A DNA stretch of 64,000 bases, taken from Penicillus capitatus (taxonomy: Eukaryota; Plantae; Chlorophyta). A program made the position numbers and the translations under genes. Shown in pieces: positions 615 to 33,920 of the stretch. The notes under the pieces were generated by a model that was not told the origin of the DNA, ran no database searches, and was given only the letters and a program-made list of their open reading frames with translations. The stretch covers positions 120,796-184,795 of the forward strand of contig OZ287718.1 in assembly GCA_965649825.1 (NCBI GenBank). The letters run 5' to 3'. The number at the start of each line of letters is the position of its first letter. The first letter of the stretch is position 1.

Positions 615-1043
615 ATGAGCTTCTTGTTACCGCATCTACATTCCGGATACGCAGTGGACCAAGCCATTCTTTCCGAAGAGCTACGTGTGGTGATCCTGCG
701 TTTTGGCCATGACTGGGATCCAACATGTATGCAGATGGATGAAATTCTCTCTCAGTGCTCTGACAGTGTCAAGAACTTTGCAGTTGTCTATCTGGTAGAC
801 ATCACAGAAGTGCCAGATTTCAATACAATGTATGAGCTCTATGATCCATGCACTGTCATGTTCTTCTTCAGAAACAAGCACATCATGATTGATCTGGGGA
901 CAGGCAACAACAACAAGATCAACTGGGCGATGAGTGATAAACAGGAATTTGTCGATATCGTTGAGACAGTCTACAGAGGAGCACGGAAAGGACGAGGATT
1001 GGTGGTGTCGCCAAAAGATTACTCGACAAAATACAGATACTGA
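615..1043 (+). CDS. DIM1: U5 snRNP thioredoxin-like protein Dim1/TXNL4A (intronless)
   Basis: 142-aa ORF, MSFLLPHLHSGYAVDQAILSEELRVVILRFGHDWD...GRGLVVSPKDYSTKYRY, matches the highly conserved Dim1 sequence end to end. Confidence 0.97.
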   Translation: MSFLLPHLHSGYAVDQAILSEELRVVILRFGHDWDPTCMQMDEILSQCSDSVKNFAVVYLVDITEVPDFNTMYELYDPCTVMFFFRNKHIMIDLGTGNNNKINWAMSDKQEFVDIVETVYRGARKGRGLVVSPKDYSTKYRY

Positions 1044-1064
1044 TGACGCCTGCCAGCAAAGACG

Positions 1065-2319
1065 TCAGAAATTTGTGATGTACTCGTCTAGAGGCTGCAT
1101 GGACATCTCTGAAGGGAGCCCTTTCTCCTGTCGGTGAAGGAAGACTTTTGTCATGTAGCTAAGCTTCTGCTGTGTAAACGCTGTGTGTCGTTCATCTTTT
1201 GCGATCTCCTCTGCCATTGCATCCAAGTCTTTCTGAGCCACTGTGTCTGTGGAGCTCCAGATGGCCATAAGCACGCTCAGTTGTTTTTCAGAGAATGCTG
1301 AGAGTCTGTGCGACTTACAGATCTCTTGGTTCAAGGTCTCGAAATGGGACGATGACTCGATGCCAGAAGACAAAGCACGGTCCTTGTTGATCAGGTGCAT
1401 TGCGCACTGTAGACGCGTGAGATCGTCCTCTGTATAACACTTCATTCTGCAACACACTCCACATGATCACATTTCACAGTAAACACCATGAGGCACATAC
1501 CTGTGCGGTCGGAGACACTGGTCAAGCAGTGCTTGAATGAAATGCCTGCGCCTATAAGTGAGAATGGCAGATGATAAGAAGAGATCCACGATCGATGCTT
1601 CGTTAAAATGCCTAACGCATTCCATAGATCGAGTCGAGATATTTTGAATGTCGATGTGTATACTCGAGTCGATGGGGTTTGATGGTTTCTTTTGCCAGTG
1701 GATCCAGATAAGCTTCAAAGTAGAAACGCAGACGGGCCAGTCCCTTCCAGATCTCACCGATCTGCACTTCCGTAAACGACATTCCCCTTTCTTCGCGTAT
1801 CACTTCCCTCATGACCTCCACCAGCAGTTCCGAGATGCCAAAGAACACGCCGCATGGCTGAACACTGTTTGCCTTTGTTGCTATCCTTCCGAGGCGTCCC
1901 ATGGATTTGACCATCACCACCAACTGGATGTGATCTAGCTCAGAGAAGACCCGCTTTTCTCTCATATCTTTGCACATATCTCCAAGCAATTGAGGATGCA
2001 TGTAGCCCAGTAATGCACAGGAACTGAACATGAACACCATTCTGCGTGGTGTCCAAGAGGAGATCGCTTTCCTCGTCGTACAGAGCTGTGACAGATGATT
2101 CAGATCTTTATGCATGGCGTCTCTGGGAGGGCGAAATCGACAGTGCGCCAACTTGCGGAAACTCAGTTCCAGCTGCGAGGGTGTCGGTTGTTTCTCTTGT
2201 GTGACCTTGTTCATTATGCTCTCCCAACTCAGAGACTCCCATTCTTCATAGATCTTGGTAAAGCAGCGCACGTGTTTGAGATATATTGCATGAAATTTAA
2301 CACATCTGATGACTCTCAT
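1065..2319 (-). CDS. Organelle-targeted helical-repeat protein, degenerate OPR/FASTK-like (about 3 exons)
   Basis: ORF pieces 1612-2331, 1467-1757 and 1065-1457. First ATG at 2319 gives a presequence-like MRVIRCVKFHAIYLKHVRCF. Repeated motifs such as FTEVQIGEIWKGLARLRF, FNEASIVDLFLSSAILTY and FSEKQLSVLMAIWS resemble OPR consensus. Family call is an inference. Confidence 0.5.
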
Positions 2320-2354
2320 CGTATTAAACAATCACGGCAGCACGCAAAACGCAT

Positions 2355-4645
2355 ATGACTCCGACTTTGGAATTTGAAGAATTCTGGCCACAATGGCCTC
2401 GAGAGACATCCGGACGGTTGCTATTAAATCTCTGTGTAGAGACGTCGTTCGCTGAGTTGGTGCATCACATCTGGTCTCCCAATTCCCGTTTTCTAGTACT
2501 CAGTGTGCTCTTTCGCGAACCAGACAAAACTGCATGCGCAGGCAGAAGCGAATAGACAGAGAGGGTATGTAGACTTTCATTGCACCGATTGGATGAGTTC
2601 TGAAACGGAACTCCCCGACCTGCCTGGGGGTTTCGATTGGCGTTGGGAACATTCTCCAACTGTTAATTTTATTACTAATATTCGAGGAAAAATGAGAAAG
2701 GCGAGTGCAACCACCCATCCTGTACGTGTTTGGAGTGCGGATGAGAGAGTGCGTGTATATTAGGTGCGCTTTGAGGCGAGAAGTGGCAGTGTTTTGACAC
2801 AGCAGCCCTTTAAGACAGAAGAAGTTCAGAGATGCACACAGTACAAGGAGAAAGAGTGTATGGTCGTGGATGCATGTGTGCGATCAACGGCACCGTTGTG
2901 TGACAAAATTCGAGTTCTTTGCAGGCAACACATCCAATCCGATGTCGCCTTCTCCATTCGACAGACATTGTTGCAGATACACCATTAAGGCTGTGAAGCC
3001 AGAGAAGTGTCAGTTGAGAGTCGTTTACCACATCGAGTACCTCCAAAGTCTAAACGGGTTTCTCAAAGGCATTCTCGAGAGAGGCGCCAGAGGTATGGCA
3101 GACGAATAAATATCTGGATGTAGAAGAAAGGCGTCTTCTTTTCTAAATGTTCAGACGGGCTGACATCAAACTACGATACATTTGGCAAAGTGCTGCTTTC
3201 CTGTGTCTCTCCGATCTCAGAGAATGCTACTGCTGATTCAACACCAGAATCCCAACCGGATGTCGATGTGCTTCAATCCTCCGCTAAAAACATGTGATGC
3301 TCTTCTCGCTGTCCCATCAACAAATGTGTTTTCCTGCAGGCGTCCCTACCAAAGCGTTCTCAATTGGTCAGCAATTCCGCCTATATCTTTCATCTTTGCC
3401 TTGCTCAACATCCTGACAACAAGGTCATTATTGATGTGGTTTTTTGAACTTGTGGTGGAGTTTTCGATGGCTGTTCTCTATGTCGCATTTCTATATCTTC
3501 TCTTCCACGTGTGGACATTGATTAGGGAGAAATTCAATACAGGAGGTCTTTTCTTGATATCTTCGGAAATCGATTTCCGACAAGGGTTGATGACAGTATT
3601 TGTCCTTATCCTTTTGTTGGAGGGGTCACAGGTTTTCATCCATTTTTTCAAGAGACTGTTGAATATTTCTCGATTGTGCTGCATTCATCTGTACGGAAAG
3701 ATGAGTGAGTTTTTGGCCAGACTGCATGCAGAGAGCCATCGGAATCTCCACAGTAGCCCCTCCATCGATGACACTGTGAGCCTTGCTGAGCATCTGACGG
3801 ACGACGACCGGATCGATTCTGGATGCTCGGCAGAGACAGAGGTCGACGAAGGAAATCAGGATGATTCCTTCATCCGAAAAATTGTGAACGGATTCTGGAC
3901 TCTTCTATATTACAGTAAGACCAAACAGACACTGTCTGTCTGTCATTACGCTCTCCACATCCATCACCTGTTGCCGATGCTGTAGATAGTTCAGATTTCA
4001 GAAAGTTTGCGCATTCCATGCCAATCGAAGAACGCACCAATCCGGATGGTAGTGTCGTTGAAGAGCTGTTCGAGAATGAACGGCTCCAACCTTTCCGGGT
4101 GAGTGAGATCTGTCCAACAATACCACTAGAGAGAGATTGTGAATGAAATCGATGGCTGTCCTTCGTTCTAGGGTTGGGGACATCAGTGGCCGGGACATTT
4201 CCTCCCGACGGATAAGTTTAGTCATTGGAGTTCTTTTGATATGGATGGGAACATTGTCACATGTGACCAACGTGAAAAAGTCGAACCGTTTCTTCCACCC
4301 GGATGGGAATGGAAGGAAGAAGACTGGAAGGTAATGCAAGGACGCAACTCTGTTGCCAAGTGTGTTCACCATCTGATGCTCCCTCCATAGGTGGATCTGA
4401 GCAGAAGGAATTCGCAAGCTGTCGACAAACAAGGTTGGTATTACAGTTTGGACTTTCCATGGATCAAATTCGCCCCAGAGAAAAACAACGGAATCCGAAA
4501 GATGTCTGATTTCGTACGACGACGCAGATATACCAGAACACGCATCCGCAAGACTCAAGGTCTAAACGCTAATGCCCAAGCATCCACTTTCCAAGACAAT
4601 CCCTCCAATCCAACGCCATACTTCTCCTTTCTCCAGTTCCTTTAG
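2355..4645 (+). CDS. VASt (StART-like lipid-transfer) domain + transmembrane segments + C-terminal DysF (peroxin/ferlin) domain protein, multi-exon
   Basis: Spliced reading gives VASt-like segments LLLNLCVETSFAELVHHIWSPNSRFL, RQRGYVDFHCTDW and RYTIKAVKPEKCQLRVVYHIEYLQSLNGFLKGILERGARDGLTSNYDTFGKVL. Hydrophobic helices follow at about 3370-3650. The DysF signature is EELFENERLQPFRGWG..LPPGWEWKEEDWKVD..VDKQGWYYSLDF..SDFVRRRRYTRTR. GT-AG introns with matching phases link the VASt, TM and DysF segments. Confidence 0.75.
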
Positions 4646-4764
4646 CGTTGAAGCTGCTCGCTCGTATTGCATTTGTATATACACAAGAGCAACAACAACA
4701 ATGATTAAACGAATGAGAATAAGCAAGCGTCATCCGATCTATCCGTCCTGTCTCTGTTAGATCA

Positions 4765-7700
4765 TCACGGAGAGGATGTGCGCTTCATGGCGTCGCCACA
4801 ATGCCACCAAGTCCTGGCGGACTTTCTTTCTTTTCTGTCTGTCCCTCTTCGGTTTCTGTTTCGTCGAGAGATGCAATGGCTTTCTCTGCTACCTCTGATC
4901 GAGGCTGACGACTAAAGCCGTATCCCAAGCTGTACCCAGATTCTTGAGACAGACTCTGTAATTCAGCAAAATGGTCTCGGCGGAATTCATCTAAAATGTT
5001 ACCGATCTCCTCCTCTGGAATACGAACCTGCCAAAGAAAAACGATCTATCGGTTTTTTATATCGTAGAGAGACGTGACCTGTGCAAGGACGGTCGCAGCA
5101 AGTTGAAGACTGGGTTCCAGTGTTTCGGGAACAACCACATTGGCTCCTGCTCGTTCAAGATTGCGAGCATGTTCTAGATCGAAAGCACGGACATATGTCT
5201 TGACATGAGGAAAATGATGCTTCATGGTCCACACACAGCGATAGTTGGAACCTGTGGGAGTGACAGCGATCGGGCCAGATCGCAAGCAAACGGTAACTAG
5301 GCCATACCTGGACTGTCCAGCACAACAACGATACAAGAGGCTCGTGCTGCACCCAAGCTATGCAAGACTTGTTGGCTGCCTGCATCTCCAAAGTAAACAG
5401 GCAGATCAAGATTCTTGCCATTCTGTCGTCAGAAAAGTCAGATGGGATGCTCATGCCTCGACGAGATGCACACGCACTTGCACTCTCTGGCTGACAACAT
5501 CGACAGCCACAAAGGGGATCAGCCGTTCGCTCAGTAACTGCGCAATCAACTGTCCCACACGGCCGAAACCGGCAATGATGATGTGATCCTTCAGGTGTCC
5601 TGTTTCGACCTCATTTGGAGTCATTGCCTGGCACACACGTTGGTCAACGGAACAGAGAAGAGGGTAAGAAAGTCAAGCCCATCCTGCCGACCTTCATATC
5701 GCCCTTTTCAAAAATCCTCCCCAACCGAGCGCCGGCAATAGCAAGATAAGGCAGCAATGCCATGGAGAGTGAGACAACAAGATAAAGCTGTGTTACCAAT
5801 GCTGTGGGTAAGACGCCTTGAGAAGCAGCTTCTCCGAATGCAACAAAGGCGAATTCGCCGCCAGGTGCCAACAGAAGACCCGATCTCAATGCAGTCAGTC
5901 GAGAAATGCCAAACAGTGGACCCACTACTGCCATCACTGCCACTTTGCCAGTCAAAAGGAAGGAGAGTTGGAAAATGAGGTTCCGCCAACTCTCGATCAT
6001 GAGACCGACAGAGATCTCCATTCCGACTGTCATGAAGAAGAGACCCATAAGCAATCCCTTGTAAGGCTCGATGTCAGATTCCACCTATTTGCGAGAAGCA
6101 CGAGAGAAATCGGACATGGATAGCAGGGATCGCACCTGCACAACGTATTCTGTTTCTGCTAGTAGAAGACCCGCTAGGAAGGCCCCAAGCGCAAGAGAAA
6201 GGCCTGCGAGCTGTGTGATTAGACTGGTGCCCAGAACAACTAGAAGTGTAAGAGCAGCAAAAATCTCCTTGTTTTCTAGACGAGCAACGAGACTGTAAAT
6301 TGGTCTGACCCACACGCGCCCGACAGAAATAATCCCTAGAGCAGAGGAAAAAGTGGATCTGTACGATCCTCAAACGCACGATGACGGAACATGCCTGTGA
6401 TGCAGATCACTGCTTTGATTGCTGCAATACTGAGCGCCTTCATGATCACATCAAGTCCACCGCCAGATGCTGAATTCTTGTTTGACAGCAGAGGAATGAG
6501 CATGAGAACCACAACCACTGCCAGATCTTGCAACAGGAGAATGGAGAACGTTGCCCGGCCGTGACGTGATCCAGTCTCAGCACGTTCTTGAAGGACCTGA
6601 TCGGCACAAAGGCACTGTCCAATAAACACATTGTTCATGGCAGTAGTAAAGCGACCTGCATGGCGACAGCTGTCGACGACAGAGCTAAACCAGATCCCAG
6701 AATGATAGCACCGGGCCCCGGCAATCCAGCAAGCGACCCTGGATGGCAATGATGTGTAACATGTGTGCTAACAGAAGAGTGATTTTGATGTGACCTGCCA
6801 CTAAGGCGACGGCGATTGTGGTGACCAACACCTGAGTCGATCCCATTCCAAATACCATCTTGGCCATAGACCTCAGTCTTTCAAGACTGAGTTCCAAACC
6901 GATGTTAAAAAGTAAGAACACGACACCCAACTCTGCCAACGTCCTGACTTCCTCAATGTTCTTAATGATACCCAATGCATGAGGTCCGACCATGGCACCT
7001 GCTACCTAGGACTCACCACAAATTCATGGAGGTGAGAGTGGCACTGGCTTACAAGAAATCCGAGAACGGGAGTGGCACCAGGAAGGACCCGACAAACAAC
7101 TGGCACCATGACGACACTCATAAGCAGAAGCCAGATGGTTCGGATGAACCCCGCTTCAGATCCATGACTCTCGGGAAGCAAAGCTGAAAACGCTTCTGCT
7201 GGACGGGATATCAGACGCTGAAATGAAAGCGTTGCAGCTGTGATGAGCTTTCCTCCCAAGGGAGAAAAAGCAAGAACAAGAGCCGCAGCGAGAACAACGA
7301 TGCCGATCGCCAATGGAACACGGTGTTCGTTGACAAATGTCTTGACGGAAGCTTGGAATGGAGATTTGGCATCCACGAGGACAACATCTTCTGCACTGTC
7401 ATCGCCTGTGCCTCCAGTGCTCTCTTTATCGAGCAGTACTTTGGGTTGGAGTCCATTTTCCCTCAAAACCTCTTCCCTGTCAGTCAAGAATGATGGCTGG
7501 ATGGAACACGCATGAGGTCTGAGATCAAATGTCTCACATTTCTGCTCGGATTCGCCTGGCACCTTCTGTATCCAGCTCCTGCGATTCCAGCATATCAATT
7601 TCAGACATTGCTTTGTTAAAAGCAGTTTCAGTCTCTTTCAGAACAGCCTTGGACTCCAACTCAACAGTGACGGCTGACTGCGCTGCCTTCATCACAGCCT

Positions 7701-8832
7701 GCGCTCTGGCCTCGGCCTTACGGGCAACAGTCTGACATTCATGCACACGATCTCGCTCATGGGAAATCTGAAAGACGACGAGGAAGCACATCACTCACTT
7801 AACACGTTCCATGTGAAGGAAAACAGACTTTGGCATCAATCGATGTGATTCTCTTGCCCAAGTCTTCATAACTCGCCTTCGCTTTCTCCAGTGATTGTAA
7901 CAGTTCTCTGATCTCGGCATTGATTTCTTCCGCCGTGCGTCGTGGTTTTGAGATCGGTTTTCCATTTGTTTTCGCCATAGAGACGTCTCCAGTCGTGGAT
8001 TCCTCTTCAGCAACGGAGTCCGTGTGATACATTGGCTGCTCTCCAACTCCATCGACACCATCATGACTGAAAGCACACAGACTTCGTTCAAACGACAGCA
8101 CACATACAGTCATGAGTATGACTCTTCTGCATCTGTCGTTTCTGCGACGTGCTCTTGTAGGATTGAGATCTGGGATTTCAGCGAGTCCATCTCAGATGAT
8201 AGGAGTTCCCGTTCGTCGATACATGATTGCTTCTCTGCCAAACAGCAGTCCAGCTTCTTCTTTGCCTCTTCATATCCTTCAATGGCAACCAGTGCCAGTT
8301 CAGCAATGTTGATGGCCTGTCAACAAAGAAAGAAATGGACGATGATCTCCTGTGTTCGCGGATTTGGGAGACCTACTTCAGCTTCGAGAGCCTCTCTTTT
8401 GAAAGCAGATTTCCCAGCCTTGACTTTTGCTCTTTCGAGAGCATCCCTGAGGGGTTCCATCTCATCGTCCGACGGCGGTTCTCCCTCTTTACCGTGGTCT
8501 TCCTTTGGCGATGGCGTATCAGACGCGTCATCTGGAGTACTGTGACAAGCGACCCCGCTGGACAAAAGCACTCATTGAGATCAAGCAAGATCTCCAAGCA
8601 GAGATTTGTCTGACCGTGTCCAAAAACAACGCCTCGGTGCGTAACGCTCGTACTGAGCTTTCAGGTAACGACTGGGCAAAGACGTCTCTGTCCCCCACAG
8701 CAGAGGAAGGTTATGGCCAATGCAGCGCGAAGCACGTGTCAGATTGAGAAATCTCCTCTGCACCGAGACTGCTTTTGGATAGTGGAAAAAATGCACATGC
8801 TTTTGCGTAACGGATCTGTAAACGAGTACCAT
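4765..8832 (-). CDS. KEA1/2: Plastid envelope K+/H+ antiporter KEA1/KEA2-like (CPA2; N-terminal coiled coil, TM domain, KTN/TrkA-N), many exons
   Basis: Transit-like first exon from ATG 8832, then acidic coiled-coil exons. Motifs include LAELGVVFLLFNIGLELS, LLLQDLAVV, ESDIEPYKGLLMGLFFMTVGM, HIIIAGFGRVGQLIAQLL, VPETLEPSLQLAA and the C-terminal FRRDHFAELQSLSQESGYSLGYG. Stop TGA at 4765-4767. Confidence 0.92.
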
Positions 8833-8964
8833 GCTTGGGGCGTCTGTCAGACAATGTAATTCGCGGTATGATTCCCACGACTGCGCCGGTGACGTGACAG
8901 ACGACTCTAAGAACTCACTGACTTACTGGAGTGCGTGCGTATGGGCATTGCCGACGAATAGACG

Positions 8965-11730
8965 ATGAATCGAAGCGTCGCCCCATCGATCTTGGCGCAC
9001 TACTTTTCAAATGCGTTTGAGGATGTCGTGGATCGACACATTCGTCTGTGTCGCGCTGTACTGAGCTGCTGTTCCACGCATCCAGGGTCAAATCCACTTC
9101 TCTCGAGCTTATCGATCGTTCGAGGGAAGCCTGTGGTTTATTTGGACGGCGTCGAGCTTGAAAAGCTGAAGATCGATGAACTGTCTGCCGAGCTCAGTGC
9201 TCATCCAGATGATACCATTCGTTGTTTAGCTGCTGCTACACATCAAGCATGTGATGGAGGATCTGATGGATCTTTGTTGGACGCAGATGTGACAGTTCGT
9301 TTGTTCAACTGTCCTGCATTCAGTGTCCAGATCTCGAGCATCGGTGCAGCTCGGATTGGGAAACTGGTGAGCGTGACTGGAACTGTGTCAAGAATGAGTG
9401 CAGTAGCATCACTGATCATGTCGATGGATTGTGTGTGCAAACAATGCGGATGGAGAATTCGGAGAGAATTTACAAAATGTTCATCGACACCGACATGCGA
9501 AAGACCACGATGCAAAAGTCGTCATTTCATACCGGACACAGCATCTATCAGAAGAGGCGATTGGCAACAGATCGTTATTCGACAAGATATCTGTGCCAGT
9601 CAACAAGTGTTCTGTGCACTTCCTTTACTGTGAAATACATGTCCAGTGCTCCTTAGATTAGCGGCGGCGTTGGGAACAGTATGATTGCCGTGTTGAAGGA
9701 TGATCTTGTTCATGGCTGCGTCCTTGGCGATGCGGTGACTGTCGTCGGCATTGTGCGAACAGTTGGTCAAGCTGCATCGAAGAACAGACCACCGCCACAG
9801 CCATGCAATCCGTTCACGTTGTTCGTTGATGCTCTATCTGTGGCTCAGACTGAACCACAACGCCTTCCCTTCTCTCATCTTGGAATGCCAGATCATCTCA
9901 GTCGCTCTTTTAGTCACAGAGACATCAAGATGATTCATGCATTTCGTCGAGACTGCGCAGGACGTGTCTTGAAGTGTGCGCAGCTTCTGAAATCACTTTG
10001 GTTTACATTCTTTTGCATTCAGGCACTTGGTTCACGCCTTCTGTCCACAAGTCTGTGGTCATGAAGCGATCAAAGCGGGTCTCTTGTTGTCGTTGATGGA
10101 TGGATGCTCGAATGAAAAGACGAAACAAATCGAAGGTCATTGCGCAGAAACCACGCATCTGCATGTTCTACTCGTCGGTGATCCGGGAATGCAAACAACG
10201 GAGCTCCTCCAAGTCATCAACCTTACTCCTTCTACACCCTTCTTCATGCTTTTGCAGGAAGCAGCCCGCTGGGCTCCTAAATCTGTCTACATTACTGGCG
10301 GCCAGTGTTCAAAGAACAACTTGACGGTGTCCTGCACAAAAGAAGATACATCTGGATGCTGGATGTTTGAAGCAGGTCCAATTGTTCTGGCGAAGAACGG
10401 ATTGTGTTGTATCGAAGGATTCGATGAGTTGGCATCATCTCGACTGTTATCTCTGACGGACATTATGGACAACCATGTACGTTACTCCTGATCAGTAAGG
10501 TTTCGCGGTTTGACAAGATCTCCTCTAGGCTAATCTGACTGAAGACAGAGGTGGTGCCATCCTGTCCACTTCTGTCCCTGTCAACATTATCGCCACGACT
10601 GGACCTTCATATGGGCACTATCAATACTCCAAGACTCTGGTTCAGAATCTCCGGATAGACGAATCGATTGCATCGCGATTTGGTCTGATCTTCCTGATGA
10701 CAGACAGGCCAGATACCGAACGAGATAGGATGCTATCCCGGCACATGCTCAAGATGCAATCCCGAAGACACTTCAAAGGTCGCCCTGTTTTTTGAGAGTG
10801 GAGAATTTCCCATCACACTTTGTTCGATGTAGGTACGCACTCGAAGGGCCAACTACAGCGACGCATGGATCTCTTTTCGTCCGTCGATGAGATGTCAAAA
10901 TGTAGTGGATTCATCGAGCAACTTCAGCTGCCAGCATCACTGAGGAAATCCACAATGCCAACAGACTTTCTGAAGAAATATGTGGCCTATGCAAAGAAAC
11001 ATGTGCATCCTCAGTTGTCTAATGAAGCTATGGACACTTTGGAGAAATTCTATCTCCATCTCAGAAGCCAATTAACTGTGTCATCGGAGATCCCTGTTAC
11101 TGCCCGGAATCTTCAGATGCTCATCAGGTGAACCGAATACGCTCTGTCGGTTTCTTGCATTCCATCTTTGTAGCCTTGCCAAGGCATGTGCCAGAATCGA
11201 ATTAAGAGAATCGGTGACGGTTTCAGATGCTGAGGTATGTAAACGATCTGTTGGATTATTGAGATATCCATGCAAGTGATTCTCTAGAATGCTATCCGTC
11301 TTGTGAACCATGTGATCTGCTCGAGAATTGTAAACGCGCCAGGTCCTACTGATGATCTGCCGCTGAACAGGAGAAAGAGAAAAGCCAAACAGATTGAAAT
11401 TTTTATCCAAGAGTTGCGGCAGCATGCTTTGTCAAAAGACACAGACTTGGTGACAATGAACGATATCTACCTGGTTGCCGATGACCTCGAGTTGGATGTG
11501 GAAGACATTCAAGACTTTGTTGACAAACTCAATGATGAAGGTAACAGTGCTGATGTCTATCCATCGTGAAAGATGCCTGTTGTCTTTCAGGCGAATTGCT
11601 GAAGAAAGGCCCCCAACTGTACAGAGTATTGGGAACACAGAATGCAACGTTGCAGAACTCTAATCCAAACGGCGAAGCCAGGCGCCTCACAGGGAGAGGA
11701 TTTTCAGTGCTCAGCAGACCTGAACTGTGA
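8965..11730 (+). CDS. MCM8-like: MCM8-like helicase homolog with degenerate ATPase motifs, multi-exon
   Basis: Zn finger CKQC..C..C, OB-fold LKDDLVHGCVLGDAVTVVGIV, AAA entry CPQVCGHEAIKAGLLLSL, Arg finger SRF, VTARNLQMLIRLAKACARIELR, and MCM8-type C-terminus DFVDKLNDEGELLKKGPQLY. Walker A/B are altered (see findings). Confidence 0.85.
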
Positions 11731-11973: not shown

Positions 11974-14900
11974 TCAAAACATGATTTGGCAGTCTTCAAT
12001 AAAGAGATCCCCCAACGGGCCAGATCCAGGTCTAACGGCAAGTGCTCCCTTAGCCGCGTCGTTCACTATTTCAACACTCCAGTTCCATAAGTTGCACGTG
12101 GTATTGGTTCGCATCCAGTCAATGCCACGAAATCGGGCAGCAATAGCTCCAACTTGACAACCAAGGACATAATTTGACACGGCGGGTTGTTTGTGATACT
12201 CCCATCTTAACTTTCGCTCTGAGACACCAATTCCCAGTTTTTCATCTTCGGATAGACTGGCAAAGTCTTCTGTGGCAACGAAATGCGTAATGGGTGGGTA
12301 GTCCAGGATGTCCAAACTGGCTACCGAGGCATAGACACAGGAAAGTGCTGCTTCGGCTGGAGATAAGAAGACAGAATTGTCCAGTTCCAGAATCTCTTGC
12401 CGATAGACGGGATTGTTCATGTAATCACTCGTCAGATTCGTCAAGGCCGTGCCTGGGGGCAATGTCAGAAAGACGCGCATCTTCTCATACTTCTCAACAG
12501 AACGCAGTCTTCTGGCTAACTCCAAGGCAAATGCCACATTCATGGCCTTGGTGGTGGAATACGTCCGAATACCGGCATCCTGAAACAGAGAACCATCTCC
12601 ATCGGGATCTGTATGAACCTGTCCGTTCGCCGAATTGGAATCTCCAGGTCTTTGGATCGCAAGGTCGATAAGATCCTTTTCTTCCACATTGAAGGCGGAA
12701 CCTGAGGATTGGATAACAATCCGGCCAGACTGGAGATTCAGTCGGTTGTTCTGCAGCAGGAGCATTGTCAGGAAAAACTGACCAAGGTGTGTCACGCTCA
12801 CGGCCTTCGACACTCCAGCCATGTTACTTGACCATCCAGCTGATCCATTGTGCACAGCATTGAGAATTAAGATGTCCACTTTACCTGACTGGAATCCAAA
12901 GTGTGCAGAGATCGCTGCCGTCAGCTTCTTCACACTCTTGACATCGTCAAGAGCGACGGCGAAACATGTGAATGTTCCAACCTGTAATGGATTAAAGCGA
13001 CTGAAGATCTGAGTGATCGCTGCTACTCTCTCATTGCACGTGTCCGACGACTGAGATGTAGCAATGACATTGGCACCCAATCTGAGAAGATGGAGTGCAA
13101 CTGAGAATCCGATGCCGTTTGTCCCTCCTGTCAGCACCACGTTCTTTCCTTGCACTTGGTCGATTCTTCCTTCGTCGCTTATACGTGGCAGCGACCCATC
13201 CAGGTCTGGATCTGAGAACTGTGAGATAGAGATCTCAGAAGGTGTGATTGGAATAGCGGTGTTGAGTAACCAATCAGGACAGAGGTCACTCCTGTCGGAC
13301 TTCAAATCGTTACGTGTCAAACGAAAACCACTTGTCTCCAATCTATGCACTGCATTGTTGCTGTCTCCATGTCTTTCGTTCTCTGCCTTCTTCACTCCCA
13401 CCCGTTGAGCACTGTTGAAGATTTCCGAGTTTTTCAATCGACTCTTGATTTTTACAAGAGTCTTGTACGCTTCCTTCCCATAGTACTTATCTTCCCAGTC
13501 TTCCATACCAGAATAGGCATAATTAACATAGGAGCCAGTGCAGAAAGGACTCAGCGAGCGATAGGTATCTTCTGTCCATTTCTTCAAGGCATCCATCGTC
13601 ATGACATAATCATCGTTCGATGTCTTTTTCCTCTTCTTTTCCGGAACCATCATTGACGTGATGGACAGCATGGATACTGCATTACTATGCTTCCAGAGAG
13701 AAGGCCCTCTTCCGATATTACCCCCTAGGTGTTCCATCACAATATACACAGAGCTGTCGAATCCTTCGGGGATGAAATCAATTCCAGCATACCTAAGAAC
13801 AGAAAAGCTTATTGATCGGTGTTTCTGATTGCATGTGGACACTTGAATCGATCCAGCAAAACAAGAGAACGATTGTGTGACCACTCGTCTGTGATTCCAC
13901 TCGTCCAGTATACACGTGCATGGCGGATCCCGTACATATTGGACCATTCCGTGAATGTGTATCCTTGTCGAAATGGACCGCCTTTCAGTATCCAGTCTTG
14001 TGTATGTTTCTTGGCCTTTTCCATTTCGTCAGGACTCGAACAACGCAAGCTGAGTAAGCTGCAGCACAATAAAGAAGTCAGTGCTGTATTTTACGATCAT
14101 CCACCCAGCGTACGTGCATGCTGTTTCTGCACTCACGGCTCGCGCCGTTCGATTGAGAAAAGGCTGCAGAACATCGATCCCTTCTTCGATGGGTCCATCA
14201 AACATCAATCCAAACTCCACGCTCACCTAATCAGGTAAATAAATGCCCGTCGATCTTAATATTGTATGTGGGAATGCAAAATAACTCTGATATTTCCTGT
14301 GTGCCGATGTGGAAAGACTCTTCTGATAAAGAGGTCCATTGTCAAGCGAGGGTCGATATCAGCATCAAGGATGGTGTCTTGGTAGATATCAAGGAATTCT
14401 GCCGATGCGTCTGGTGACCTATGCAGACAAAGATGCATGGACACAGCCACCAATTAATATGTTAAGAGGATACTGGAAAAAAGCAATGTGGCCTGCTAGA
14501 TAAGACGGATAGGCAGGATATGTCCTGAGAATGACATCGGTGACGACACCAAAATTTGAACCACCAGCACCGCGGAGTGCCCACATCAATTCTGGATCAT
14601 TTGTATCATCCACGATAACGACCTCTCCATCTGGCAACACCATCCGAACAGACAGGACATTGTCCGAAACAAGTCCGCGATTGCGGGATGTCCATCCGAT
14701 GCCTCCTCCAAGGGCCAATCCAACAACTCCCACTAACGGACAACCACCCACCACAGCGGACAGACTTCTTTCCTCTAGCAAAGAAAGGACATCTTTCCAT
14801 AGAGACCCGCCTTGAGCCACAATAGCATTGGATGGAAATCTTGTCATCCACCGACGCTCGCATTCATCCAACGGTTTCTCGTCTGCGAAGTGTACCCCAT

Positions 14901-15444
14901 TGAAGTAGACCATGTCAATCACCATTCCACCCTCCGAAATGGAAAATCCAGCTGGATTGTGTCCTCCATTGCGCACCGTCACTGTCAAGTTCTGCTGTTT
15001 TGCCAGCTTAAGTGCCATTCGAATATCGTTTAGAGTGACAGGCATCATCACCATTTTTGGTTTAGCGGAGATGGCTAGATTGAATAGAGGATAGCGCGAG
15101 AGATACGATTCTGCACTTTGGGGACAGAGATAGGGACCCAGGAAATGACTGTTCAGATACCCAATGGCCTCTTCATCGAAACAGGGATCCTTCAAAGAGG
15201 ATGGAATCGAAATCTCCACCCATACAGTACAAAGTGGTCGTCCTCTGCCTCCCGGATCACTAAAGTCCAATGACTGCCTTGTAAATCCTTGTCAGCAAGC
15301 GACATCACACGTAGAAAGTGATGTGACCCTTCGCAAACCTATAAGCTCTTCGAGTGTTGAAGTAGGATAGATGGCGAACAAGAAGCATCCAACTAGAGTA
15401 ATGATCGACAGACAGAAGGTGACATAGAGCCGACGCGGATGCAT
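11974..15444 (-). CDS. Signal-anchored berberine-bridge-enzyme-like FAD oxidase fused to a short-chain dehydrogenase/reductase
   Basis: Exon 1 is MHPRRLYVTFCLSIITLVGCFLFAIY. FAD-binding motifs VRNGGHN, GGCPLVGVVG and ALRGAGGSNFGVVT; BBE C-terminus GSYVNY..W..KYYG..Y..L..IK. The same uninterrupted ORF continues into SDR motifs TGGTNGIG, ILILNA and YSTTK. Confidence 0.85.
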
Positions 15445-19792: not shown

Positions 19793-22700
19793 TCAAGTAA
19801 CCAAACCGGGACATGGACAGGGAACATTGCACTCAATAGTGAGTCTCTTGCAAATTGCCATGCAGGCGTTCACATAAGTTGCACCATCTGATGCACAGAC
19901 AGGAGAGTAATCAAACGTGCATTCATCGCAATCAGGAACGGGTTCAGGAGAAGGTTCAGCAGGTGGTTCTGGAGAGGGCTCGGCGACACCTACAAAGAAC
20001 TAAAATTCTGGAAGTGCAGTAATAATCACGAATGCTACTTGGCTTAGGACACGGACATTTGCCTGGACATGCAACGACTACATCTCTGCACTTGGCAGCG
20101 CACTCATTGCGATATGTCCTTCCATCTTCGCCGCAGACTGGATCAAGGTCTTCTGAACAAGTTTTGCAATCTATAGACGGTGTTGGCTCAGGTGATGATG
20201 GACTGATGCCTAGAAAAGTGAAATTTCTTGTGGTCCAGTTTTATTTACTGGGAGTGTACTTGGTTTGGGGCACGGACAAGCATCGGGACATGCAATGTCT
20301 ACTTTTGCGCATTTGGCGAGGCATTCGTTGCCGTAAGTGTTTCCATCAACACCGCACACTGGATTATATATTTTTGGACAGTCACATCCTGTAGAAGGCT
20401 CGGGGGAGATGGGAGGAGACACAACAGAAGCAGTTGGCTTCTCCAGTACTTTAGGTGATGGACTGGGACCTGCAGTAGAGACATTAATGCTTTTCTAGAA
20501 ACTACTACTCGATCATACCTGGCTTAGAGCAAGGACACACATCTGAACATGCGATGGCTACTTGTGCACATTTGGCAAGGCATTCATTCTCATATGTCTT
20601 CCCATCAACACCGCATACAGGATCATAAGTCTTTGGACAGTCACATCCTGTAGATGTTCCAGGGGTTTTGGGTGGAGACACGACAGAAGAAAAGGCACCT
20701 AAGGCAAAGAGTTAGTGACATCTTGCAAGATTACTACTGCATGCATGTTCATACCTAGTTTAGGGCACGGACACACGTCGGGACATGCGATGTCCACCTT
20801 GGCGCATTTAGCCAGGCATTCGTTCTCATAGGTCTTTCCATCGACACCGCACACTGGATCATAAATCTCGGGACAGTCGCATCTTGCAGATGTTCCAGGG
20901 GTTTTGGGTGGAGACACGACATGCGTAGAGAGACTGGTGCCTGTAGTTGGCAGATAGTGACATCTTGAAAGACTACGACTGCATGTTCATACCTGGTTTG
21001 GAGCAAGGACACACATCTGAACATGCGATGGCTACTTGTCCACATTTAGCAAGGCATTCGTTCTCATAGGTCTTCCCATCGACACCGCATACAGGATTGT
21101 ATGTTTTCGGACAGTCTTCGCATTTTGTGGCCGGTTTGGGTGGAGAAACAACAGTAGAAGGAATGACACCTGCAGTGGAAACATCATGTCTTCTAAAAGA
21201 GCCTCTACTACTTGTTTGTACCTTCTTTAGAGCAAGGACACACGTCGGCACACGCAATGTCCACCTTGGCGCATTTCGCCAAGCATTCGTTTTCATAGGT
21301 CTTTCCATCAACACCGCACACTGGATCATAAGCCGCGGGACAGTCACATCCTGCAGATGTTCCAGGGGTTTTGGGTGGAGACACGACATGCGTAGAGAGA
21401 CTGGTGCCTGTAATTGGCAGATAGTGACATTTTGAAAGCCCACGACTGCATGTTCGTACCTGGTTTGGAGCAAGGACACACATCTGAACATGCGATGGCT
21501 ACTTGTCCACATTTGGCAAGGCATTCGTTCTCATAGGTCTTCCCATCGACACCGCATACAGGATCATAAGTCTTTGGACAGTCGCATCCTGCGGATGTTC
21601 CAGGGGTTTTGGGTGGAGACACGACATGCGTAGAGAGACTGGTGCCTGTAATTGGCAGATAGTGACATCTTGAAAGACTATGACTGCATGTTCATACCTG
21701 GTTTGGAGCAAGGACACACGTCGGGACACGCAATGTCCACCTTGGCGCATTTGGCCAGGCATTCATTGTCATACGTCTTTCCATCGACACCGCATACAGG
21801 ATCATAAGTCTTTGGACAGTCTTCGCATTTTACAGCCGGTATGGGCGAGATTCGCGGGCATACAACAGAAGAAGGAATGAAACCTGAAATACAAATTTCG
21901 ATGCTTTTCAAGAAACGATGTTATGTTTGTACCTGGTTTGGAGCACGGACACTCGCCGGGACATGCAATAGCTACTTTTGCGCATTTTGCAAGGCATCCG
22001 TTGCCATAAGTCTTTCCATCAACACCACAAACTGGATCGTAAGTCTTAGGACAATCTTCACATTTTGTAACATGTCCAGGCAAGGTTGGCGGACATACAA
22101 CTGAGGCTGGAATGGGACCTACAGCGCAACCATCAATGCGGCTCGAAAAACCATTGCACGCCCATACCTGGTTTGGAGCAAGGACACTCATCGGGACATG
22201 CAATGTCTACCTTGGAGCATTTGGCAAGGCATTCATTGTCGTATGTCTTCCCATCAACACCGCATACAGGATTGTATGTCTCAGGACAGTCTTCACATTT
22301 TATAGCCACTACGGGCGGGATGGGCGGAGGCTCAACAGAAGCAATTGGCGCAACAGTAACCTTAGGTGGTGGAGTGATACCTGAAGCAGAGACATCGATG
22401 TTTTCTAGATATCAGGACTACTGCATATATATTCATACTTGGTTTAGCAGGGCACGGACATTCACCAGAACATCTGATGGCTACTTTTGCGCATTTGGCG
22501 AGGCATTCATTGCCGTATGTCTTCCCATCGACACCGCATACAGGGTTGTAGATCGTCGGACATGCTTTGCATGGCGACTCCGTCGTGATCGGAGAAGAAG
22601 GCGATGGAACAGGTCTTGTCGATTCCATCGGAGATGGAGAAACCACCTTAGGAGCCTCCGATGAAGAAGGTTTAACGGTTGTTGGACAAGATGGTCGGTG

Positions 22701-23155
22701 TCGTCGACAACGAGCTTTCGGCGTCGTGGGAACTTCACCTGCACGACAGAACTGTATTCGCAAGACAAAAATCACGATCCCTCACATGGACATCGTCCGC
22801 GACAAGCGACCTTGGTGCCATGGCATGCTGCAGAGCATGCATTGATGTAGGTATGTCCGTCTACTCCACATACTGGATCACGAGCCCAGAAGATCGGGTA
22901 TGGCCACGTGCAGACACACCATTTGTTTATTCCACGATCTGTGACAAGGGCGATATCTCACGCATTTGGGGTACAGAAACGAATCGAACGCAGTTTCGCA
23001 AGAAAGGACACTAAGTATACGTAGCGCTGGCACGGGCGTCGTGTCTTACCTGCAAGACCGAATGTCGACTGGACATATACTGCGACGACGAAAAGAACGA
23101 AGCATCGAGACTGCGATGCCGTCGACCAGTGAGCCTTTGGCGAAACTCTACCCAT
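19793..23155 (-). CDS. Secreted multidomain Kazal-type protease-inhibitor-like protein (13 Kazal-like domains, Pro/Thr/Ser linkers)
   Basis: Signal-peptide exon ends [19 protein letters not shown]. It is followed by 13 units of the form C-x1-2-C-P-x-x-Y-x-PVCGxDGxTYxNxCxAxC-x5-C-x3-CPC, separated by phase-1 introns. Stop at 19793-19795. Confidence 0.88.
20500..22320 (-). repeat. Tandem exon+intron units of about 240 bp encoding the central Kazal domains
   Basis: Near-identical blocks such as acctggtttggagcaaggacacac and ttcccatcgacaccgcatacaggatc recur about every 240 bp, and several introns are also near-identical. Confidence 0.85.
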
Positions 23156-32022: not shown

Positions 32023-32702
32023 GTCCAGATGATTTCATTATAGACGTTGTTTTTGTTTCGTCGGGCCAATCGTGAACACGTCTGGCAAACAGCATTCTGC
32101 CACTACCCCTGTTCGAATTCTTTCGGTCTTCTTGTCAGCATTCTGCCTGGCGATGGCGACGTCGATGATATGGATGGATAGCACAGTTTCTTTCAGACAT
32201 GTCTGTCCTCCTCCGTCCAAACTTGCACGGCTGTATCCAGTACATCAACCTCAGCACCATCCAAACTTGAGATCCTGCTTGAATTCTAAATGTGTAGATG
32301 AAGCAATACACCATCCGTCCTTCATTATAGATGCTGTTTCTGGTCACTGTGTTAGACAGCAACGATGGAGACGCTTCCCCGGCTTTCCTACAGCAAATGC
32401 GCGAGTAGAGGCACTGGATAACGGAAGATACTCAACGCTGAGTCTGTCTAGACAGTTCAGTTTCCGCGTCGGTTAGATGCATTACGTTAAAGATGTCCGG
32501 CAGATGAATTCTCCATCGTCGGTTTCCCCATTTTGATACGCTCCTGTACACTGAAATCCAGGTGGCCGACTTTCTTTGTACCTGCACGAAGACAGCGACG
32601 GGTATTAGAACAAACGAACTTCTGTAAGCCCAGGAGTGCGAGTGAGCTTTTGACGTTGTTTGAGTTTTGTTGGTTTCTTATTGGACGTCGAAGAACCTGA
32701 GC

Positions 32703-33920
32703 ATGGCTCCGCTACATATGTGCTACGTCCAGCCGTTTCCACGATACAATGCTCATGGCGTTGGGGTGCCGATATCTCCCCCAGACATGGCTGTTTACGG
32801 TCACTCACCCGTGGCATTTGATGGCTTGTCGCAAGCCGAATCGTTCAGCAGTTGGGAATCACCTCCGCCACAGCCCTATTACCCTACCGCAGCGCCGATG
32901 TACGAAGCTAGACCGAAAGGGCTGAATCCTGCGTGGGACATGGACAGCCTGAAAACGGCGCTTCAGAACGCCCGTCCCGGTATGAACGAGATACGCTACT
33001 ATCTCGAGACGTGTACGTTCAAGCCCCGAGAACAGGCATTCACGACGCTCGTGAATCAATGCAGTCGCCAGAGAGAGTGGCGCAAAGCCCTCGAAATTCT
33101 GGAAGCAATGAAGGGATTTCGGGGTCTGCGTCCGAATAAGTATACTTATTCGGCGGCCATTTCAGCCTGCAGCAATGCCGGAAAATGGGAAAAGGCATTG
33201 GAGGTCTTTAATGAGATGAAAGCTGTCTCTCAAAAGGACCCTGGTTGTTTGCCAAACTTGGTCACCTACAGCACTGTCATCACGGCGTGTGAGCGCGGCG
33301 GAAAATTTGATAAGGTTCTTGCCCTCTATGACGAAATGATCACGGAAAAAATATCTCCGGACAAGATCACCTTCGTCTCTGTTCTCGGAGCCTGTGTGCG
33401 GAGCAAGAACTGGAAGCGAGCTGAAGAAATTCTGGAAAGTATGCATGCAGACGGCCTTGCCGGAACGTCTCGTGTTTATACAAAGCTTCTGGAACACTAC
33501 GGCATTACAGCAGAGTGGCAAAAGGCCTTGGATCTGTTCCTGACCATGCAGATTCAGGGATCGTCCGTCGATCGCCAGACGTGCCGAGCGTTGATGTCAG
33601 CATTGGAAGCGGGCAAGAAATCGGATATGGCTGTCCAATTACTCGAAGCCATGAAGGAGGCAAAAATCACGGCAGATGCTCAGACATACAACTCTGCTCT
33701 GCGAACACTTGCTGCGTGCAGCGAATTGGACAAAGCCGTGGCAATGATGAATGAAATGGACGCACTGAAAATCAAAGTAACGTCGGAGACAGCGAACACG
33801 GTTCTGGTCTCCTGCGCTACGGCTAACAAGGTTACTCTGGGAAGGCAGTTGATGGGGAAATTTGCATCTCTGGGTCTGCCCGTCGATGGCAACACCATCG
33901 GCAACAAGAAATCTCATTAA
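32703..33920 (+). CDS. Pentatricopeptide repeat protein, paralog A (intronless)
   Basis: About 35-aa repeats such as PNKYTYSAAISACSNAGKWEKALEVFNEM and PNLVTYSTVITACERGGKFDKVLALYDEM, after a Pro/Ser/Tyr-rich leader. Confidence 0.9.
   Translation: MAPLHMCYVQPFPRYNAHGVGVPISPPDMAVYGHSPVAFDGLSQAESFSSWESPPPQPYYPTAAPMYEARPKGLNPAWDMDSLKTALQNARPGMNEIRYYLETCTFKPREQAFTTLVNQCSRQREWRKALEILEAMKGFRGLRPNKYTYSAAISACSNAGKWEKALEVFNEMKAVSQKDPGCLPNLVTYSTVITACERGGKFDKVLALYDEMITEKISPDKITFVSVLGACVRSKNWKRAEEILESMHADGLAGTSRVYTKLLEHYGITAEWQKALDLFLTMQIQGSSVDRQTCRALMSALEAGKKSDMAVQLLEAMKEAKITADAQTYNSALRTLAACSELDKAVAMMNEMDALKIKVTSETANTVLVSCATANKVTLGRQLMGKFASLGLPVDGNTIGNKKSH

Follow-up and report, generated by a model that had tools for sequence, protein, structure and literature searches.

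The window, the whole 64,000-nucleotide stretch of DNA that was analysed, carries on its + strand (as is the case for all features below) an MCM8-like gene at 8965..11730. Its product, here called the window protein, is probably a constrained pseudo-ATPase or pseudo-helicase of the MCM8 clade, that is, a non-catalytic subunit and an independent functional analogue of MCMDC2/mei-MCM. As its own ATP-binding and ATP-splitting residues are all replaced, the protein is most likely a non-catalytic partner or scaffold and not a motor. The MCM8-like pseudo-ATPase is known from two species; the derived state of its dead site is older than the split between them and has since been held by purifying selection.

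The predicted CDS runs from ATG to TGA over 9 exons and specifies 788 aa, in a comparative gene model supported by Pfam and by the structure of the gene in the sister species, the exon limits being drawn from the model and the orthologue together. Exon 1 (8965..9606, also found as ORF P0121) encodes the N-terminal helical subdomain, the zinc finger and the start of the OB fold, and exon 2 (9657..9973) the remainder of the OB fold and the N-C linker. The AAA+ core begins in exon 3 (10023..10212) with Walker A and continues through exon 4 (10258..10476), which holds the helix-2 insert region, Walker B and an MDNH motif, into exon 5 (10529..10778), with the pre-sensor-1 (PS1) hairpin, sensor 1 and the Arg finger. 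Exon 6 (10833..11127) contributes a variable insert, the lid and sensor 2, exon 7 (11174..11234) the end of the lid, exon 8 (11288..11540, also supported by Pfam) a linker and most of an MCM8-type winged helix, and exon 9 (11591..11730) the end of the winged helix, a C-terminal tail and the stop codon TGA. The 8 introns are all GT..AG and 45-54 nt long, and the frame is intact across the 9 exons; the intron before exon 4 differs in length between the window (45 nt) and the relative (47 nt), and is thus a true, non-coding intron. Once these short introns are removed, all of the motifs listed in the preliminary description of this DNA are found where it had placed them.

Upstream of the gene lies a conserved 5' flank (8736..8964) that aligns gap-free with the relative at 90% identity, compared with 77% for the introns and 73% for the 3' flank, and that is a putative 5'UTR or promoter. 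E2F-type sites (TTTSSCGS) are absent from this flank and under-represented in the window. No second MCM gene was found in the window, L002 or L003. A viral or foreign source for the MCM8-like gene was considered and rejected on the basis of its spliceosomal introns, its neighbour-like base composition and its conserved synteny with host genes. The host itself is an uncultured alga and plausibly a green one, as the preliminary description supposed.

By sequence, the window protein is a member of the MCM8 family with the full predicted architecture of OB fold and zinc finger, AAA+ core, lid and winged helix. Pfam recognises MCM_OB at aa 125-250 (5.6e-15), MCM (PF00493, 161 bits), MCM_lid (PF17855, 84 bits) and, at 11381..11628 across the intron 11541-11590, the MCM8-type winged-helix domain WHD_MCM8 (PF25051), which scores 61 bits, the cut-off being 26. 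In the family alignment, the zinc finger (9436..9513) keeps 4 of 4 Cys (C158, C161, C178 and C183). The best solved relative is human MCM8 at 325 bits and 8e-96, any other MCM reaching 222 bits at most, and identity to MCM8s is 31-33% over the full length and 39% to a Chlamydomonas-type MCM8 over matched stretches. An AlphaFold2 model has the complete MCM fold with a mean pLDDT of 71.6, and its hits to MCM structures, human MCM8 (7wi7_A) among them, have E-values of 1e-43 to 1e-37. Neighbour-joining (NJ) placed the protein inside the MCM8 clade, apart from MCM2-7, MCM9 and archaeal MCM, in 198 of 200 bootstrap replicates, in a tree where MCM2-7 is represented by one sequence. The MCM8-like identity first proposed for the gene is therefore upheld by the winged helix, the score against human MCM8 and the tree.

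Placement within the MCM8 clade is looser, with sequences from ENA as the sister in 35% of NJ replicates and Chlamydomonas in 25%, and the nearest named MCM8s are scattered over Chlamydomonas, Closterium, Paulinella, Coemansia, Peronospora, Cimex and lamprey. In a 140-taxon tree, the window protein and its orthologue sit on a very long branch grouped with ENA representatives, a grouping that is read as long-branch attraction. Simple arithmetic from the NJ distances makes the branch of the window protein about 2.7 times that of Chlamydomonas MCM8, and the past acceleration in rate is compatible with neofunctionalisation as well as with a transient relaxation.

The loss of the cis ATPase site is seen in alignments with human MCM8 and with the family, the latter consisting of the best-scoring 146 MCM8-family representatives from 1.84 billion proteins, aligned with MAFFT. 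Walker A reads GDPGMQTT (10177..10200) where the family has GDPGLGKS, Walker B reads CCIEGFDE (10405..10428) in place of CCIDEFDK, and sensor 1 reads IIATTGP (10586..10606) in place of AAANP; residue by residue, the counterparts in human MCM8 are GDPGLGKS, CGIDEFDK and IAAANP, with SRFDL for the Arg finger and PITTRQL for sensor 2. The Walker A Lys, present in 146/146 representatives, is Thr in the window protein, the Walker B Asp and Glu (144/144) are Glu and Gly, and the sensor 1 Asn (145/145) is Gly. None of the 146 representatives in the MAFFT alignment has lost this cis triad. The initial claim that the cis ATPase motifs are lost is thus borne out, the catalytic residues replaced here being invariant among the representatives.

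Lost positions are concentrated in the AAA+ core. Of 83 conserved family columns the window protein keeps 55 and has lost 28, and all 6 of the cis ATP-site columns are among those lost (chance P = 0.001). Lost and kept columns number 25 and 36 in the AAA+ core, 1 and 7 in the N-terminal domain, and 2 and 11 in the lid. Several losses are absent from the preliminary description: DEFDK has become EGFDE, the near-invariant MEQQ has become MDNH (10465..10476; MDNC in the relative), the tip of the pre-sensor-1 hairpin is EDRGG where the family has AKAG, with Lys replaced by Arg (10541..10555), SRFD has become SRFG, and LIRL has become LISL.

Such a site could in principle belong to an active ATPase whose catalytic residues have been relocated, as in 'with-no-lysine' kinases. 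The tight constraint on the AAA+ core (dN/dS 0.11) would agree with this, as would an adenine pocket that is partly kept: of the 5 positions named for human MCM8, 2 (Leu and His) are retained when the human MCM8 alignment is compared with the residues given in PMC10415141, and the protein may have some residual nucleotide binding. A working non-canonical site is nevertheless very unlikely, as the Gly-Lys of Walker A, the two acidic residues of Walker B and the Asn of sensor 1 have all been substituted together, and the P-loop VGDPGMQTTELLQEAARW has no Lys or Arg within it or adjoining it, the first such residue being the Arg of AARW.

The orthologue that allows the age of these changes to be judged was found in sample ERZ26696514, where it is syntenic, has identical intron positions and has an intact frame. 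A word-seeded search of 5.8 billion proteins with exon 1 returned only its own ORF and one orthologue, and no further relatives came up in JGI metagenome contigs, which were scanned once with the protein and once with the two-orthologue alignment. Of the 28 derived residues, 24 are common to both orthologues. Walker A, Walker B and sensor 1 are identical in the relative at the protein level and differ by 1, 2 and 3 synonymous changes, respectively; the five ATPase-site motifs together have 11 changes that are synonymous and 1 that is not. The metagenome assembly behind the window was built from long reads, at 44x coverage, which leaves room for the suspicion that the odd motifs are sequencing or assembly errors; however, they consist of multiple substitutions with no frameshifts, the Walker A codons read in the other two frames give no Gly-Lys-Ser, and the independent assembly, at 184x, has the identical derived residues with synonymous differences in the same codons. 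With dS at about 0.3-0.4, the two assemblies are not one genome. Error as the source of the motifs, which the preliminary description had allowed for, is refuted and can be set aside with near certainty.

Constraint on the gene can be measured from the same pair. Between the orthologues dN/dS is 0.167 (NG86) to 0.245 (ML), with pN at 0.062 against pS at 0.303 (Fisher p = 4e-45). By region, the lid (0.105) is held as tightly as the AAA+ core, and the segment at aa 669-786, which holds the winged helix, has the lowest value in the gene (0.06). A decaying MCM8 duplicate, or a pseudogene that has yet to acquire stops, would account for the long branch and for a retention of conserved columns that, at 66% against a median of 97.6%, is the lowest of the full-length aligned sequences. 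It would not account for a 2.4-kb frame and all 16 splice sites that are intact in both species at this dS, nor for a single exonic indel between them, 3 nt long and in exon 2, when intron lengths vary freely. The level of constraint is also comparable with that of the neighbouring genes, for which dN/dS is 0.04 to 0.29. Decay had been suggested earlier as the reading that a dN/dS near 1 would indicate; with the values found being well below this, it is scarcely credible.

The residues that act in trans present a more divided picture. The Arg-finger motif ASRFGL (10670..10687) keeps the Arg found in 142/143 ungapped representatives, with the Asp of SRFD replaced by Gly, and sensor 2, PVTARNL (11093..11113), keeps an Arg found in 142/142. 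In the comparison with the relative, ASRF has four consecutive synonymous changes and the Arg is kept in both species, whereas the sister species has Leu in place of the sensor-2 Arg, the sole orthologue difference among the 55 retained family-conserved columns. The earlier statement that trans elements are retained consequently holds for the Arg finger of both species and, for sensor 2, in the window species only.

These residues bear on a further possibility, a hexamer in which the window protein alternates with an active partner such as MCM9, so that its trans residues complete the partner's sites and three of six sites fire, much as the non-catalytic alpha subunits of F1-ATPase give an arginine to the catalytic beta sites. 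The constancy of the Arg finger and the presence of the sensor-2 Arg in the window species favour such an arrangement, and the stable heterodimer interface I of the human complex contains the Walker site of MCM9 (PMC11055865) and, as the trans residues of MCM8, R586 and R711 (PMC10415141). On the other hand, keeping 2 of 2 trans residues is no better than chance (P = 0.44), the sensor-2 Arg is lost in the sister species, and the changes of SRFD to SRFG, MEQQ to MDNH and LIRL to LISL fall against it. In human MCM8-9, the Walker A site of MCM8 is the essential one for unwinding, as MCM8 K460A abolishes it and MCM9 K358A merely reduces it (PMC11055865); a hexamer without MCM8 cis sites is therefore expected to be a poor helicase. 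The suggestion in the preliminary description that trans elements were kept specifically to complete a neighbour's site is thereby weakened, and a half-active hexamer of this kind is a minority reading, though one with some substance. The window protein may still supply the Arg finger for the site of a neighbouring subunit, although it seems that this is not essential.

The preferred reading, a non-catalytic subunit, combines these features as follows. All parts needed for folding, joining a ring and contacting DNA are kept: the N-terminal helical subdomain, the zinc finger with its four Cys and the OB fold, then the alpha/beta core of the AAA+ module and its hairpin loops, and finally the lid and the winged helix. 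The protein's own nucleotide site is destroyed, with the Gly-Lys of Walker A, the Asp-Glu of Walker B and the Asn of sensor 1 all replaced. The protein would then serve as a non-catalytic subunit or scaffold in an MCM assembly for recombination or repair, with MCM9, canonical MCM8 or another partner, and its N-terminal tier and winged helix would serve to bind DNA, or to clamp it, and to recruit partners. It would have arisen independently from a bona fide MCM8, in parallel with MCMDC2 and MEI-217/218 in animals and Mcmd1 in Tetrahymena. It is improbable, though still conceivable, that these algae have no other MCM8 and that the window protein remains paired with MCM9, giving a natural MCM8-9 ring in which the MCM8 Walker A site at the labile interface II, the one that human unwinding depends on, is permanently dead. 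If so, the ring would be a three-site motor or an ATP-gated DNA clamp and not a helicase, and would mirror Drosophila REC, in which the cis site is kept and the Arg finger is lost.

The value of the non-catalytic MCM8-like protein lies in where it stands among the MCMs. MCMDC2, MEI-217/218 and Mcmd1 control meiotic recombination, but their divergence obscures both their origin and their structural relation to the active MCMs. Here, the MCM8 clade itself provides such a case, a constrained MCM subunit whose nucleotide site is dead while the remainder is recognisably MCM8, and the orthologue pair defines which derived residues are under selection. The protein offers a natural separation-of-function allele for both kinds of ATPase site in MCM8-type rings, one that complements Drosophila REC and the human K460A and K358A mutants, and it suggests that pseudo-ATPase MCM subunits have evolved repeatedly. 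This value is reduced in so far as the host organisms are uncultured.

Compared with canonical MCM8 from human, Arabidopsis and Chlamydomonas, the window protein has the same order of domains, including the MCM8-specific winged helix, and keeps the zinc finger, OB fold, lid and Arg finger; it differs in being without the cis catalytic residues and in changes at MEQQ and other near-invariant positions. Non-hydrolysing subunits that give an arginine to a neighbour's catalytic site are found in F1-ATPase (alpha) and V-ATPase (B), which belong to a different ATPase fold family and are an analogy only. Like the window protein, Drosophila REC is a fast-evolving protein of the MCM8 clade with altered ATPase-site motifs, and REC functions in meiotic recombination (PMC1231718, PMC6553819). 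The two are mirror images, however, in that Walker A (GDPGIGKT) and a conservative Walker B (LDDVDKL) persist in REC but the Arg finger (LLREFHLV) is gone, whereas in the window protein the Arg finger persists and the motifs lost are Walker A, Walker B and sensor 1.

Non-catalytic MCM paralogues in meiotic recombination have precedent (PMC5070785, PMC6553819, PMC6922451), and MCMDC2 and MEI-217/MEI-218 are thought to be non-ATPase modulators of an MCM8-containing complex (PMC5070785, PMC6553819). The window protein also resembles MCMDC2/mei-MCM in having an MCM fold in which Walker A and B are not conserved. MCMDC2 and MEI-218 were initially referred to as MCM8-derived, a statement that is not supported by their description as separate, highly divergent MCM paralogues (PMC5070785, PMC6553819, PMC6922451); the window protein, in contrast, is MCM8 by sequence (8e-96) and has the MCM8 winged helix. 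Its membership of the MCM8 clade argues against orthology to MCMDC2. Tetrahymena Mcmd1, which acts with Pamd1, is meiotic and functional without the signature motifs for ATPase activity, unwinding or DNA binding. Both its sequence and its secondary structure have diverged strongly, and clear orthologues of MCM8 and of MCM9 are present beside it (PMC6922451). Unlike Mcmd1, the window protein largely keeps the DNA-binding architecture of zinc finger, OB fold and hairpins.

The interval 10170-11135, previously attributed to an MCM8-like protein with an otherwise intact reading frame, sits within a multi-exon eukaryotic gene on the + strand. Once eight short GT..AG introns (45-54 nt) are taken out, its nine exons form a 2,367-nt frame that starts with the ATG at 8965, ends with the TGA at 11730 and encodes 788 aa. 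Both parts of that attribution are borne out. Pfam recognizes MCM_OB (aa 125-250), the MCM P-loop domain (aa 316-532, 161 bits), MCM_lid (aa 584-667) and the MCM8-specific winged helix PF25051 (aa 690-755; 61 bits, cut-off 26); the best match among solved structures is human MCM8 (8e-96, 325 bits), followed by the next MCM at 222 bits, with human MCM9 at 142 bits. Structure prediction with AlphaFold2 from 31 MCM8 homologues (mean pLDDT 71.6) yields a helical subdomain, OB fold, AAA+ core, lid and winged helix, and the model has matches among MCM structures with E-values from 1e-43 to 1e-37, human MCM8 chain 7wi7_A included. In a reduced NJ analysis, the protein and its sister-species orthologue fell within MCM8, apart from MCM9, one MCM2 (the only MCM2-7 sequence in the tree) and archaeal MCM, in 198/200 bootstraps. 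The gene is thus shown to be a real, intact member of the MCM8 clade.

Pairwise alignment with human MCM8 confirmed the degenerate cis motifs that had been described: Walker A is GDPGMQTT (human GDPGLGKS), Walker B is CCIEGFDE (CGIDEFDK) and sensor 1 is IIATTGP (IAAANP), while the trans motifs are SRFGL at the Arg finger (SRFDL) and PVTARNL at sensor 2 (PITTRQL). The same picture is seen across the family, for which 1.84 billion cluster representatives were searched exhaustively with phmmer and the 146 best-scoring family members were aligned with the protein. The Walker A Lys (146/146 representatives) is replaced by T and the preceding Gly (142 representatives, A in the other 4) by Q; the Walker B Asp and Glu (each 144/144) are E and G, and the sensor 1 Asn (145/145) is G. 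The Arg-finger Arg (142/143 ungapped representatives) and the sensor 2 Arg (142/142) are kept. Loss of the cis triad was found in 0/146 representatives. Further changes that the preliminary description did not list, all at near-invariant positions, are DEFDK to EGFDE, MEQQ to MDNH, Lys to Arg in the PS1 hairpin, SRFD to SRFG, and LIRL to LISL. The protein retains 55 of the 83 columns that are ≥90% conserved (66%), the lowest of all full-length sequences in the alignment (median 97.6%), and most of the losses fall in the AAA+ core (25 lost, 36 kept); the N-terminal tier lost 1 and kept 7, including 4/4 zinc-finger Cys, and the lid lost 2 and kept 11. The 28 lost columns include 6/6 cis ATP-site columns (P = 0.001), and retention of 2/2 trans columns is unremarkable (P = 0.44). 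As judged from these alignments, the cis nucleotide site is shown to be destroyed.

The exon-1 ORF is recorded on a single contig, ctg340469_44x_l (942,848 bp) of ENA metagenome assembly ERZ25074695, and the window is an internal, reverse-complemented part of this contig. A search with the neighbouring AsnRS returned a 92%-identical fragment on ctg303805, a 1.39-Mb contig of the separate assembly ERZ26696514 (184x) from a sister species, on which gene order is that of the window; exon 1 searched against a 5.8-billion-protein collection found exactly one other protein, 85% identical and on the same contig. A word-seeded search with the full 788-aa query missed both the window's own ORF fragments and this orthologue fragment, which the exhaustive and exon-1-only searches recovered; long divergent queries may overlook exon-sized matches in such searches. 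The neighbours at the sister-species locus match those in the window (DIM1, Na/H exchanger, adh_short/BBE, FAD_binding_4, F-box and GST), and the gene there has the same nine exons, 8/8 introns at identical positions with GT..AG ends, and an intact frame of 787 aa. Intron lengths are 50/53/47/56/53/46/51/46 in the relative and 50/49/45/52/54/46/53/50 in the window, with differences that are not multiples of three, and the only exonic indel is one of 3 nt; the conserved introns, intact frame and lone indel validate the predicted gene structure from comparison alone. At the protein level the orthologues share 87.3% identity. JGI metagenomes yielded no MCM8-like relatives, and no further MCM gene was found within the window or the fetched loci.

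Comparison of this pair bears on two alternatives named at the outset, namely that the gene is a decaying duplicate under relaxed selection (dN/dS near 1) or that its motifs are assembly errors. By NG86, dN is 0.065, dS 0.388 and dN/dS 0.167 (about 0.245 by YN00 or ML), with pN of 0.062 against pS of 0.303 (Fisher p = 4e-45), which rules out the first; intron-interior divergence (K = 0.27) is near dS. The ratio is 0.40 in the N-terminal 120 aa, 0.21 in the OB/zinc-finger tier, 0.11 in the AAA+ core, 0.105 in the lid and 0.06 in the winged helix and tail, and as the values for seven genes or exons nearby lie between 0.04 and 0.29, the gene is under constraint equal to that of its ordinary neighbours. 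Assembly error is ruled out by the independent assembly, in which synonymously different codons encode identical derived residues. The dead-site state is therefore shown to be held by purifying selection in two species; since 24 of the 28 derived residues at family-conserved columns are common to both orthologues, it is also older than the species split.

Walker A, Walker B, sensor 1 and the Arg-finger motif are protein-identical in the relative, with 10 synonymous and 0 non-synonymous changes, including four consecutive synonymous changes across A-S-R-F. Among the 55 retained family-conserved columns, one differs in the relative: the sensor-2 Arg is Leu (CGG to CTG). The proposed retention of trans motifs thus stands for the Arg-finger SRF in both species, but not for sensor 2. 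From these codon changes, SRF is under selection, possibly for structural reasons, and the sensor-2 Arg, the second trans-acting residue, is on this substitution dispensable in the sister species.

The nearest named MCM8 by distance is that of Chlamydomonas; the sister group in the NJ replicates was other ENA sequences in 35% and Chlamydomonas in 25%. In the full 140-taxon tree the pair lies on a very long branch beside other ENA representatives, a grouping taken to be long-branch attraction. Three-point distances (window-Chlamydomonas 1.13, window-Gadus 1.31, Chlamydomonas-Gadus 0.79) give a branch ~2.7 times that of Chlamydomonas MCM8. As present-day constraint is normal, this acceleration was episodic, and probably either coincided with the loss of catalysis or came after it.

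The gene neighbourhood suggests that the source is a photosynthetic eukaryote, as it includes a plastid Rieske (PetC) exon, three PPR paralogues, DIM1, AsnRS, an AP-mu subunit, a Na/H exchanger, a GST-fold, DHAR-like ORF (Pfam GST_N) and a monodehydroascorbate-reductase-like ORF, the last two read from translation. The only named eukaryote in the 120 best AsnRS matches is the chlorophyte Monoraphidium (66% identity). With Chlamydomonas having the nearest named MCM8, a green alga is thus a plausible source. Upstream of the MCM8-like ATG, 229 nt at 8736-8964 are 90% identical and gap-free between species, on par with exons (introns 77%, 3' flank 73%); this may be a conserved 5'UTR or promoter, and it contains no E2F-type site. 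At 11974-15270 (-), a 657-aa ORF with a short-chain dehydrogenase domain and a BBE-like C-terminal motif adjoins a FAD_binding_4 exon, with which it may form one fused oxidoreductase gene; the region is conserved in the sister species (dN/dS 0.135-0.165). Tandem ORFs with a repeated Kazal-like Cys-rich module occupy 20973-22775 (-). The PPR-repeat paralogues (32667-33920, 38600-39835 and 44530-45772, all +) have a common N-terminal block, C(T/Q)FKPRE(Q/R)AFT.L(I/V)N(Q/M)C(S/G)R, and the sister species has a conserved copy of the third (dN/dS 0.14). A satellite of 329-bp tandem units (30.4 copies, 95% identity) extends from 54000 to 63997, reaching the window end yet internal to the 943-kb contig, with a GC of 0.66-0.68 and strong GC skew against 0.44-0.51 in the remaining window; it could be a centromeric or subtelomeric array. 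It is absent from the 20.5 kb fetched of the syntenic sister contig, where homology ends near window 51,700 and which stops ~12.5 kb past AsnRS. Close to where that contig ends, a run of three ORFs of 224, 483 and 800 aa (780-5301 of the fetched AsnRS-side locus) occupies the position of the satellite; the ORFs have no Pfam match on record and might be a mobile element.

Each MCM ATPase site combines a cis half, with Walker A, Walker B and sensor 1, and a trans half that contributes the Arg finger, sensor 2 and sensor 3 (PMC4619765); for human MCM8-9, K460 and D518/E519 are the cis residues, and the trans residues are R586 and R711 (PMC10415141). DNA unwinding by the human complex is abolished by MCM8 K460A and only reduced by MCM9 K358A, the MCM8 Walker site belonging to interface II, which is labile, forms the hexamer and 'powers' unwinding, and the more structural MCM9 site to the stable heterodimer interface I (PMC11055865). 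Because of this role in the human complex, a ring in which the algal protein replaced MCM8 would lack the critical site and, by analogy, keep the structural site at best, which favours a role as clamp or scaffold over that of a normal helicase. The protein probably serves as a non-catalytic subunit or scaffold in a recombination or repair MCM assembly, possibly donating its Arg finger to a neighbour without need for sensor 2. Non-catalytic MCM-fold precedents in meiotic recombination are MCMDC2, MEI-217/218 and Tetrahymena Mcmd1 (PMC5070785, PMC6553819, PMC6922451); in the literature these are separate, highly divergent MCM paralogues and not MCM8 derivatives, contrary to the derivation earlier proposed for MCMDC2 and MEI-218. 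The divergent MCM8 of Drosophila, REC, is the mirror image of the algal protein, having retained Walker A (GDPGIGKT) and, in conservative form, Walker B (LDDVDKL) but lost the Arg finger (LLREFHLV).
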